Shown here: piece by piece, positions 60,294-63,936 of the stretch
Layout of the letters: each line of letters starts with the position of its first letter
Numbering within the stretch: the first letter of the stretch is position 1
Source of the DNA: Parasitella parasitica NRRL 2501
Lineage: Eukaryota; Fungi; Mucoromycota
Direction of reading: 5' to 3'
Assembly: GCA_025201805.1 (NCBI GenBank)
Contig: MU619309.1
Coordinates: forward strand, 64,657-128,656
DNA length: 64,000 bases
Notes under the pieces: generated by a model
The model's database searches: none
Told to the model about the DNA's origin: nothing
Seen by the model: the letters and a program-made list of their open reading frames with translations, nothing else
Program-made: the position numbers and the translations under genes

Positions 60294-60789
60294 AATAATG
60301 GAATTACATCATCTTGAGATTTTTGGTTTNNNNNNNNNNNNNNNNNNNNNNNNNNNNNNNNNNNAAAAAAAAAGCCTCTGATATCTAATGAAATAAGCAA
60401 CGAAATCTCTTTTATATACCGTACAAATTTTTGCTGGCCATGCCATATCGATGACTCCCGCCTTTATCAATATGTCAAAATGTGGATGGGCCGAGGACAA
60501 TCGAGAATCGTGTAGCTTTCCCCCTATGACAGACTATTCCTATGTATCCCAATGTCTCGGTTGATGATTTATAAATAAATAAAAATAAAAAAGGATTGTA
60601 TCATTGTGGAGCTATAACCAATATTTGTCGGCACTGCTGTATTGACTCTTTGTCATTAAAAGTCTTTGAAAGATTTATTCAAAAAAAAAAAAAGAAAAAA
60701 AAAAATATATAATATATTAGCTGCGAGGTTTTTTTTTTCTTTTTTTTTTGGTTGATTAAACCATTTCTTTTTGTCTTTCAACACTTAAT

Positions 60790-62175
60790 ATGTCGCGCCA
60801 TAGAGCCGTTAGAAATCTTAACATTGACGGTGAATTTCCGAGCTAAAAGTAGGCGTAGAAAGGCAGCTAATCTCTGTTGTAAAATAGATATTCTTGACGA
60901 AAATGAGTATGGAGAGTACGATGAAGATCAAAGTAAATTGCGGCACAACTGTAAAAGGATGAGATACTGACTACCGTTGCTCTAGTCGATGAAACCGAAA
61001 TGTCAACTGAAGATTTAGATAAATTAGACGAAGGATTGGCCTACGTTTATAGTGTTATTGGAGACGACACCATCTTGACTTCGAGAGAAATCAAGGAAGC
61101 TTTGTGGTATTACTATTTTGACAGAGAAGAGACAGTGAATTGGGCACTCGGTAATGCATACTGATTGGGGGACTTTCGAAATTTGATCATTAATAAGCCT
61201 GTATGCAGAGCATATTGCCAAAGAAAAGGCATTGGAGGAGAAGAAAAAGGCTAAAGAAGAAGCCAAGAAAGGTGGGTTCATTAACCAGCATTTTCCAGAG
61301 AGAGAGAGAGAGAGAGGAGAATATAAATACGCACAAGGAAAAAAAAATTTCTTTCCTTTTCTTTCCATTGATCAACACTCCAAAGGTAAGCAGACGTCCT
61401 TGATAAAACGAGTTTGCAATGCTAATTTTCATGCCAAGGATTATTATGGCCGATAATAGTGGCAATAAACAGGCAATGCCTACTCTCTCTAGTCTGTCCA
61501 GCGCGCGTCAGTCAGCATCCTCGACCAACAGTTTAACTCAACTACGACAGAAAATACAGAAACCTACCGCTCCACTTGTTTCTTCGTCTAATGAAACAAA
61601 AAAGCCGCTTTCGTCCTTGCAAACATTAGCACAAAGATCCAATACCAACGCTCGACCCACCCCTTCCCTTGCTTCTCTTGCTGTGAACTCCTCCACAGTA
61701 AAAACATCAAACAGCTTGGCCCATTTGGCCTCCCGTCAAGCAGCTCCCAAACCCACTCCCAGCGCTGCAGGAGGAGGAGGAGGAAGAGGAGGAGGCTCTC
61801 TAACTGATCTTGCATTGAGTAAACAATTATCAAAGCCAACATTGATCCAACCTTCCTGTTTGCCTGCAAAAACCCCTCCAGCTGGACCAAACGCTGATAG
61901 CCCAACTCTAGAGGAATCAGCATCATCGTCGGATGAGGAAGAAGGGCCAGAAGCAATGTACGAAAACCCATTATGCGCAAAACCGTCAGCAGCAGCGCAA
62001 TTCCTGTTCAAGCCTCAACGATTATTACAGTTTGATCCACAGGCAGTATTTCAACAAGCCCGCAATAAGCCCACGTCAATCCACGTATTTGAGTTTAATC
62101 AACCTAGTCCTGATGACATTGTCATTGCTGCCCAAAGCGAACGTAGCGGAAAGCGATCATAATCCTTTATTACCG

Positions 62176-62225
<50 letters not shown>

Positions 62226-63936
62226 ACCAAATAAAACTAACAAAAAAACATTCGCATTTTTAATAGCTGCCGCAGAAAAGAAAGCCGCTGCCACCGCCGC
62301 TTCAGCTAAAGCCAAAGCTAAAGCTGTCAAAGCTCCCAAGGAAGAGGCTGTTGAATTCCTTTCTGATCAAGAAGATATCAGTCAAGAAATGGATGCCATG
62401 GGGCTCGGTAGCAAGACAGCGGCAACCAAGTCTGTTGCAGCAACTGAGCCGTTTGTCAAAGTGCCTGCGTCCAAGCGAGTAAACGTAGCAGAAGAGTACC
62501 AGAAGCGATCTGGCGAGAAGCCCAAGTTAAATCTAGTTGTAATCGGACATGTAGATGCGGGTAAATCGACACTGATGGGGCATTTCTTGTACGACTTGGG
62601 CCAGGTAAACGAACGCACCATGCGCAAATTTGAACGGGAATCGCAAAAAATTGGAAAAGGGTCGTTTGCGTATGCCTGGGTTCTGGACGAAACAGGCGAA
62701 GAACGAGATCGTGGCATTACTATGGACATTGCTACCAACCATTTCGAGACTGAACACCGTCAATTTACATTGCTGGATGCACCTGGCCACCGTGATTTCA
62801 TCCCTAATATGATATCTGGCACTGCACAAGCCGACGCTGCTATTTTAGTTGTAGATGCCTCGACAAACGCTTTTGAGGCTGGCTTTGATGCTGGAGGGCA
62901 GACCAAGGAGCACGCGGTCTTGGCTAGAAGTTTGGGTGTGCAGCAATTGATTGTGGCCATCAACAAGCTGGATATGACAGACTGGTCTCAAGAGCGCTTC
63001 AAGGAGATTGAAGCCAAGCTTGGAGCCTATCTTTATCAAGTTGGGTTCAGGAAATCCAAGGTGGTATTCGTACCTGTGTCTGGGCTGACTGGTGAGAATC
63101 TGGTCAAAAGGAGCCAGATTTCTCAGTTGACAAGCTGGTATAATGGACCTTCGCTGATGGAGCAAATCGATAAATTCGACGCTCCTGTGCGTCTGTTGGA
63201 CAAGCCCTTGCGAATGCGTGTTACTGATTTCTTTAAAGGTGGCATTGGGAGCAGCGGTGGCGTCTCTGTTTCAGGAAACATTGAATCTGGCACTCTTCAA
63301 ATAGGCGAACAGATTATGATTGTGCCTGGCAATGAAGTGGGCTTTGTTAAAAGTAAGTAGACTATGCCGTAGCAATGTAAGGAGGCATGTATTCATTATT
63401 TTGCTTAGCCATGCAAGTCAATGAAGAACCAGCTACCTGGGCTGCTGCAGGCGATTCCGTACTGATGACATTAGTCAATTTGGATATCATGAATCTAAGG
63501 TAAAAAAAAAAAAATCTTCGAGTGGCGAACTTTTGTTCTTGACAGATTCATCCATAGCAATGGATGTGTGCTATGTACAGGTGCAAAGCCTGTTCCGGTG
63601 ACAACGACATTTGAAGCGCAAATTGTAGTATTTGATATTCGTATTCCCATCACGCCTGGGTACCCTATTGTTCTTCACCATGGCAGTTTGGATGAACCAG
63701 CATCGGTTATGAAGCTCGTAGAAATTATAGACAAAGCAACTGGACAAGTGACAAAGAGGAATCCTCGATGCCTGACAAAGGGAATGACAGCAAAGATCCA
63801 GATCAAACTAGCCCAGCGTCCTATTCCGCTAGAAACGTTCAAGGACAATAAGCATTTGGGCCGAATCATGCTGCGTAAAGACGGCGAAACGGTTGCTGCT
63901 GGTGTTGTGAATGAAATTCTAACGTTTGGTTCCTGA
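60790..63936 (+). CDS. HBS1: Hbs1 translational GTPase, 7 exons; long intron 61272-62266
   Basis: [10 protein letters not shown] start, HBS1_N ([12 protein letters not shown]), [44 protein letters not shown] and NKLD. Confidence 0.95.
61297..61316 (+). repeat. (AG)10 microsatellite near the 5' end of the long HBS1 intron
   Basis: Seen directly in the sequence. Confidence 0.95.
61446..62162 (+). CDS. SKI7/HBS1Lv3-like exosome adaptor ORF (238 aa) nested in an HBS1 intron
   Basis: Motifs [12 protein letters not shown] and [16 protein letters not shown], preceded by repeated LxxLA helices in a disordered S/P-rich region. Confidence 0.85.
62181..62220 (+). repeat. (CT)20 microsatellite just upstream of the branch point of the long HBS1 intron
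   Basis: Seen directly in the sequence. Confidence 0.95.

Follow-up and report, generated by a model that had tools for sequence, protein, structure and literature searches.

A predicted long-range helix brackets the SKI7 unit nested in an HBS1 intron of Parasitella parasitica and related Mucorales

How is a 995-nt intron that holds another gene spliced in a fungal gene whose other introns are only 53–58 nt long? The locus of the ribosome-rescue gene HBS1 in Parasitella parasitica NRRL 2501 raises this question, for its fourth intron is about 17 times as long as the neighbouring ones and encloses SKI7, a gene of RNA decay. Dual coding of HBS1 and SKI7 is among the most widely conserved alternative-processing events in eukaryotes. 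The literature that we searched names no cis-element controlling the choice between the two, describes no RNA structure controlling HBS1/SKI7 and gives no account of the present arrangement in Mucorales, an earlier account in Marshall et al. 2018 (PNAS) being possible. The window, that is, the whole 64,000-nt stretch of contig MU619309.1 that was analysed, contains the complete locus, and all coordinates of Parasitella refer to it.

The RNA evidence consists of the contigs of one public run, which we take to be RNA because the contigs are spliced at GT..AG; contigs fix neither starts nor levels and drop rare forms. Seven joints were found in them, namely those of five ordinary HBS1 introns of 53–58 nt, of the 995-nt intron and of a 53-nt inner intron. 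The long intron, originally predicted from the letters of the DNA, is thus confirmed by a GT..AG joint, and the typical intron size of about 70 nt that was assumed with it turned out too large, as each of the six other RNA-confirmed introns of the locus measures 53–58 nt. Pfam and homology searches of HBS1 were run exon by exon. The features are as follows, all on the forward strand.

60790-60829, 60888-60932, 60986-61150 and 61209-61271, forward strand: HBS1 exons 1-4 (GT..AG joints in RNA contigs), encoding over 60790..61271 the HBS1_N region (Pfam HBS1_N, E=6e-13, in exon 3)
61272..62266, forward strand: HBS1 intron 4, phase 1, 995 nt, host of SKI7 (RNA joint skipping 995 nt, contig depth 235)
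61297..61320, forward strand: 5' arm, (AG)10 at 61297-61316 plus a 4-nt purine flank (sequence, folding)
61322..61327, forward strand: TATA-like hexamer directly 3' of the 5' arm (sequence; putative promoter role)
61337..61385, forward strand: non-coding first exon of SKI7 (contig start; 5' end approximate)
61386..61438, forward strand: inner intron in the SKI7 5' UTR, 53 nt, consensus donor GTAAGC (RNA joint, depth 141)
61446..62162, forward strand: SKI7 open reading frame (homology of profile A1, published motifs, transcribed in an RNA contig)
62180..62220, forward strand: 3' arm, a 41-nt TC repeat that is also SKI7 3' UTR (sequence, folding)
62230..62241, forward strand: AATAAA (62230-62235) next to a predicted branch-point motif with its branch A at 62240 (consensus; putative roles)
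62267-63352, 63409-63499 and 63558-63936, forward strand: HBS1 exons 5-7 (RNA joints), encoding over 62267..63936 the translational GTPase domains (Pfam GTP_EFTU, E=5e-51)

The outer donor of the long intron at 61272 is the non-consensus GTGGGT, its acceptor AG ends at 62266, and the predicted branch-point motif CTAAC occupies 62237-62241. The nested open reading frame is SKI7, and RNA joints and homology show that it forms a complete small transcription unit within HBS1 intron 4. Its profile (A1) matches human HBS1L isoform 2 (9g8m_E, E=0.0076) and, weakly, yeast Ski7; two motif blocks that are invariant in alignment A1, both fitting the published consensus of the Ski7/HBS1LV3 exosome adaptor (PMC6143672), align to the human isoform in that match. 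The SKI7 contig (depth 141) runs from 61337 through the nested frame into the TC repeat, separate from the HBS1 contig and without a link to HBS1 exon 4, so both outputs are represented among the contigs. It begins only 15 nt past the TATA-like hexamer, with the AG repeat just upstream of its start, and the region 61272-61336 is covered by no RNA contig. An internal SKI7 start at about 61337, downstream of the 5' arm, is therefore supported rather than proven, since contigs cannot fix start sites. The original prediction had SKI7 transcripts starting 3' of the AG tract from an internal TATA; the contig agrees with that position, while the TATA as driver is unproven, the hexamer standing at the same place in M. 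velutinosus and M. bainieri and being present in only five of 12 species. A third contig (depth 44; span 62232-62294 noted) reaches from the repeat into HBS1 exon 5 without splicing, past the branch point and the acceptor, and represents either SKI7 transcripts reading into that exon or pre-mRNA.

In a frame test, splicing of HBS1 exon 4 to the inner acceptor was out of frame, so that SKI7 needs its own first exon here. Two other ways of making SKI7 in Parasitella were rejected, a cassette or alternative-acceptor form joining exon 4 to 61439 and a joint from an extended exon 4 to 61439; each is out of frame, and neither joint is among the RNA contigs. Exon 4 itself is open through the AG tract up to the inner donor (61209-61385), and the inner donor has the same phase as the outer one. 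Splicing from the inner donor to 62267, which would insert 38 aa into Hbs1 in frame, is not found among the RNA contigs.

The two ends of the intron carry complementary tracts. The (AG)10 starts at intron nucleotide 26, 25 nt past the donor GT, and the TC repeat starts 17 nt past the SKI7 stop and ends 16 nt 5' of CTAAC (15 nt before the preceding A), which verifies the placing of (AG)10 and (CT)20 from which a zipper across the intron had been proposed. Helices were scored with a compact-helix model, which replaced RNAduplex with long loops as too noisy. The perfect 20-bp stem of the proposal can form between the arms, and the best compact helix has 24 bp with one bulge (-43.9 kcal/mol; z -7.2 against dinucleotide shuffles). 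The folding check that had been suggested for the intron also came out in favour of the helix: in the partition-function fold of the whole intron, whose minimum free energy has a z of -2.7, 24 nt of the 5' arm have a probability above 0.5 of being paired to the 3' end. The register of the helix can slide, giving an effective intron of 71–91 nt; the shortening thus stands, and the single value of about 70 nt gives way to a range that depends on the register. The 5' leg measures 25 nt, registers ending at or before 62218 leave 21–39 nt to the predicted branch A, and the total donor-to-branch linker with the helix is then 46–64 nt for that predicted branch point. The stem had further been thought to hide the internal splice sites. 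The helix loops these sites out and does not pair with them, so that hiding has no support; nor is it needed, because removal of the looped-out inner intron first leaves the outer ends intact. None of the Rfam covariance models matched the intron near its gathering score.

Zipper stems of the RPS17B type in S. cerevisiae introns are defined as having 6 bp or more and no more than 5 bulged nt, as connecting a 5' part of the intron with a branch-proximal part, and as leaving a linker of 42–85 nt (PMC12350175). The predicted Parasitella fold lies within these values, with 24 bp, one bulge and a linker of about 45–65 nt.

The pair of repeats is exceptional in its own genome. With 167 tracts of at least (AG)10 in 32.8 Mb, chance would place about 0.2 AG-then-CT pairs within 1 kb in the whole genome, and the HBS1 pair is the only AG-then-CT pair within 2 kb among the approximately 142 tracts listed, in which inverted and direct AG/CT neighbours are equally rare. 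None of 40 other AG tracts has a partner at or below -30 kcal/mol within 1.3 kb on either side, so there is no genome-wide repeat class. The enrichment of paired AG/CT tracts that had been envisaged was accordingly not found, and such a class is ruled out for the AG/CT tracts of at least 10 units to which this test applies.

Homologue searches and contig look-ups brought 11 further loci in which SKI7 is nested in the same phase-1 HBS1 intron, here of 871–1631 nt; a metagenome scan for nested loci yielded no usable one. Within fixed windows (intron nucleotides 7–100 against the last 150 nt), the compact helix was better than in dinucleotide shuffles at eight of the 11 loci (p 0.002-0.012), namely in M. 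velutinosus, M. bainieri, Mycotypha, Benjaminiella, Choanephora, R. microsporus, Absidia and a Lichtheimia-like locus. By the same fixed-window test, no significant helix is present in Phycomyces and in two related JGI loci (L005 and L015), which retain the intron. Complementary intron ends of possibly different sequence, as had been expected of orthologues, are thus found in eight cases and missing in three. The helices comprise 17–25 bp, and in all nine species with a significant helix the 5' arm starts 20–43 nt past the donor. For the seven species with a placeable, predicted branch point, the 42–85 nt linker is found in six (Parasitella, M. velutinosus, M. bainieri, Mycotypha, R. microsporus and, with one branch candidate, Choanephora), and Benjaminiella lies beyond it with a linker of about 105 nt.

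The arms themselves differ widely among these species. In five species a purine tract faces a pyrimidine tract, both of them irregular; Rhizopus microsporus and Absidia repens have complex, unrelated arms that are not repeats; and at the Lichtheimia-like locus, the weakest case, the polarity is reversed with the pyrimidine arm at the 5' side. Within the pair of Mucor species, GGG in one 5' arm lies opposite CCC, and the corresponding A-rich run in the other lies opposite U, which reads as a compensatory change, the alignment of the tracts being ambiguous. Judged from the sequences, what is conserved is the potential to pair and not the sequence. We regard the complementary arms as a real and probably functional feature, probably those of a yeast-type zipper stem, conserved in position rather than in sequence, that bridges the donor and the branch point around the nested transcription unit; the AG/CT microsatellites would then be just Parasitella's form of a conserved pairing.

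When blocks were shuffled so as to preserve local composition, the real helix was still better in seven of the 11 species tested (p 0.0025-0.027), with Absidia (borderline), Lichtheimia and the remaining loci not reaching significance. Cognate arms paired better than non-cognate arms (p=1.2e-4 by permutation over 12 species), a statistic drawn from related, non-independent species, the low complexity of whose arms precludes formal testing for covariation. The advantage persisted among the six GA/CT species (reached in 3 of 720 permutations, and in 1 of 120 with Parasitella left out). It was stable when the windows were set to five different sizes, and no cognate effect was seen for five pairs of control windows taken at the same loci (p 0.19-0.97). 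A positional scan placed the best partner at the opposite intron end in five of 11 species and among the top 5% of windows in two more. In whole-intron ensembles the end-to-end helix was dominant in eight of 11, and in M. bainieri it lost in the whole-intron fold.

These data bear on the view that two independent elements pair merely by composition. The 5' arm would then be a GA-rich part of the internal SKI7 promoter, the 3' arm a pyrimidine tract that serves the branch point or SKI7 3'-end formation, and the helix incidental. With the 5' window reversed, the cognate advantage weakened but was in good part kept (p 0.002; Wilcoxon test of real against reversed windows, p 0.09); likeness in composition and in repeat unit therefore accounts for part of the match. 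Helices of the sense and the antisense strand were equal in mean stability, with no sense-strand G-U bias, so strand asymmetry gives no demonstration of RNA-level selection. The same view is favoured by the three species without a helix and by the pyrimidine tract after the SKI7 stop, which occurs in nearly all nested copies, arm-less ones included, and likely has a second role, since it is kept where the 5' arm is missing. However, the shortfall of the block shuffles in seven species, the non-repeat arms of Rhizopus and Absidia, the species-specific pattern matches of Benjaminiella and Choanephora and the lack of a cognate effect in the other window pairs argue against it, and we consider such an incidental helix rather unlikely.

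The stability of the antisense helices would also be expected of a DNA-level inverted repeat without RNA function, formed by opposed sites for GAGA-type factors that bound the nested unit, or as a mutational by-product. A protein site would keep its motif, whereas the arms change completely between genera, and the AG tracts of at least 10 units show no genome-wide pairing; this explanation appears highly improbable.

If the helix is real and selected, its main job could lie at the SKI7 3' end rather than in shortening the distance from donor to branch point. It might mask a pyrimidine 3'-end signal or hold the transcript together, so that the HBS1 pre-mRNA escapes intronic cleavage and polyadenylation, an idea of the kind proposed for human long-range pairings (PMC8052449). 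Such a role would suit the 3' arm lying 10–35 nt past the SKI7 stop in six species, the AATAAA abutting the branch point in Parasitella and the linker of Benjaminiella exceeding the zipper geometry. In Rhizopus and Absidia, however, the 3' arm lies near the branch region and far from the stop, the hexamer beside the branch point is not conserved across species, and the constant 20–43 nt from the donor points to the spliceosome; a main role at the 3' end thus seems distinctly improbable.

The zipper stem suggests the following course of events. Transcripts from the HBS1 promoter would carry both arms, and the arms would pair into the predicted helix, which comparison supports, starting 20–43 nt past the donor and closing 5' of the branch point. 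The helix would draw the non-consensus donor to the distal branch point, allowing a 1-kb intron to be spliced among introns of 53–58 nt. It may also tip the choice of acceptor towards the distal site and away from the inner, out-of-frame one, and let splicing prevail against cleavage at the SKI7 3' end, where the AATAAA adjoins the branch point. SKI7 transcripts, beginning 3' of the 5' arm, could form no helix and would use their own short intron. More tentatively, an RNA duplex that is old and independent of sequence might be what makes room, in a genome of short introns, for an intron housing an entire and highly expressed gene. Because the duplex would span the internal start, the choice of promoter might then switch the RNA structure automatically, and with it decide between splicing and 3'-end formation. 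The duplex may be an unrecognised control element of the eukaryote-wide choice between HBS1 and SKI7 isoforms.

Like the yeast zipper stems (PMC12350175), the Mucorales helix ties the region near the donor of a long fungal intron to the region near its branch point, and its sequence is poorly conserved. It differs in that yeast zipper stems are each reported from few orthologous introns, whereas the Mucorales one keeps its position over several families, and in that the Mucorales helix, known from prediction, encloses in its loop an entire expressed gene, complete with an intron and a 3' end of its own. The complementary dinucleotide repeats near both intron ends in Parasitella recall the (AC)m-(GT)n bridged introns of teleosts, a genome-wide class characterised by splicing independent of U2AF2, whose individual cases are poorly conserved (PMC4691745). 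In contrast, the pairing described here concerns a single locus without genome-wide enrichment, its position is conserved, and most orthologous arms are not pure repeats; the HBS1 intron lies outside the AC/GT class of fish. What survives of the splicing zipper first proposed is therefore the end-to-end pairing, seen in eight of 11 orthologues and best between cognate arms, and not a microsatellite system like that of fish.

As a functional analogue, the TPP riboswitch intron of Neurospora NCU01977 offers long-distance pairing from near the donor in a fungal intron: a conserved donor-near element pairs over hundreds of nucleotides and promotes that donor (PMC3597705). Unlike that intron, the HBS1 intron has no aptamer or Rfam match, its proposed switch is the transcription start rather than a ligand, and its arm sequence is unconserved. 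Long-range complementary regions in animal introns likewise loop out alternative terminal exons and transcript ends, but they were found through sequence conservation in large metazoan introns, whereas the Mucorales sequence turns over in a setting of introns of about 55 nt (PMC8052449). With regard to the gene arrangement, Candida albicans makes Hbs1 and Ski7 from one locus by alternative promoters with an internal SKI7 start (PMC3597508), and Parasitella shares with it the single locus, SKI7's own first exon and, as the contig suggests, probably the internal start. Human HBS1L isoform 2 (HBS1LV3) is similar in being a GTPase-less Ski7 that ends inside an intron; Parasitella differs by joining the Candida and human features in a fully nested unit with a 5'-UTR intron. 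A duplex whose position is conserved while its sequence turns over is a directly testable element, consisting of two short arms, and Mucor is genetically tractable. It would also be a naturally occurring zipper stem that several fungal families have retained, in a setting where covariation cannot be read from alignments, and it points to a way of searching early-diverging fungi for structured long introns and nested genes.

The arm-less loci delimit the role of the helix. In L005 and L015, SKI7 starts 62–80 nt past the HBS1 donor, which leaves no room for an upstream arm; as both keep the intron, at least one lineage can do without the helix. As a substitute in the arm-less species, exon 4 might pair with the 3' tract (p 0.01 in L015, 0.32 in L005); this was not accepted, because of the value in L005 and because exon 4 is purine-rich everywhere. 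At these loci a TATA-like hexamer just 5' of the SKI7 start overlaps the HBS1 donor itself (L005:2420-2426 and L015:1429-1435).

SKI7 stands alone outside HBS1 in Rhizopus stolonifer (L014:1501-2151) and on another contig (L008:2001-2472), and R. microsporus still has it nested, so that the separation is apparently lineage-specific; the post-stop pyrimidine tracts of the stand-alone copies are weaker. The SKI7 acceptor is out of frame with HBS1 exon 4 in most Mucorineae and in frame at the Lichtheimia-like (L007:2444-2545), Phycomyces (L012:1292) and Absidia (L013:1463) loci, where it precedes a conserved basic motif, RKPxYRRPP. An HBS1_N-SKI7 fusion isoform, like human HBS1LV3, is possible at these three loci. 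The internal first exon of Lichtheimia encodes a start of its own, which agrees with the annotated start of L. hyalospora P0017.

Public annotations at six of the loci (L001, L002, L003, L004, L011 and L013) miss the long HBS1 intron and divide the gene in two, an N-terminal part that in some cases is joined to SKI7 and a GTPase gene of its own; full-length Mucorales Hbs1 is therefore systematically mis-annotated. In the Parasitella window, A-rich and T-rich tracts at 60680-60750, 5' of the HBS1 start in the space that separates HBS1 from its upstream neighbour, make up a perfect inverted repeat of 21 nt, which has a spacer of 24 nt and includes a matching G/C interruption.
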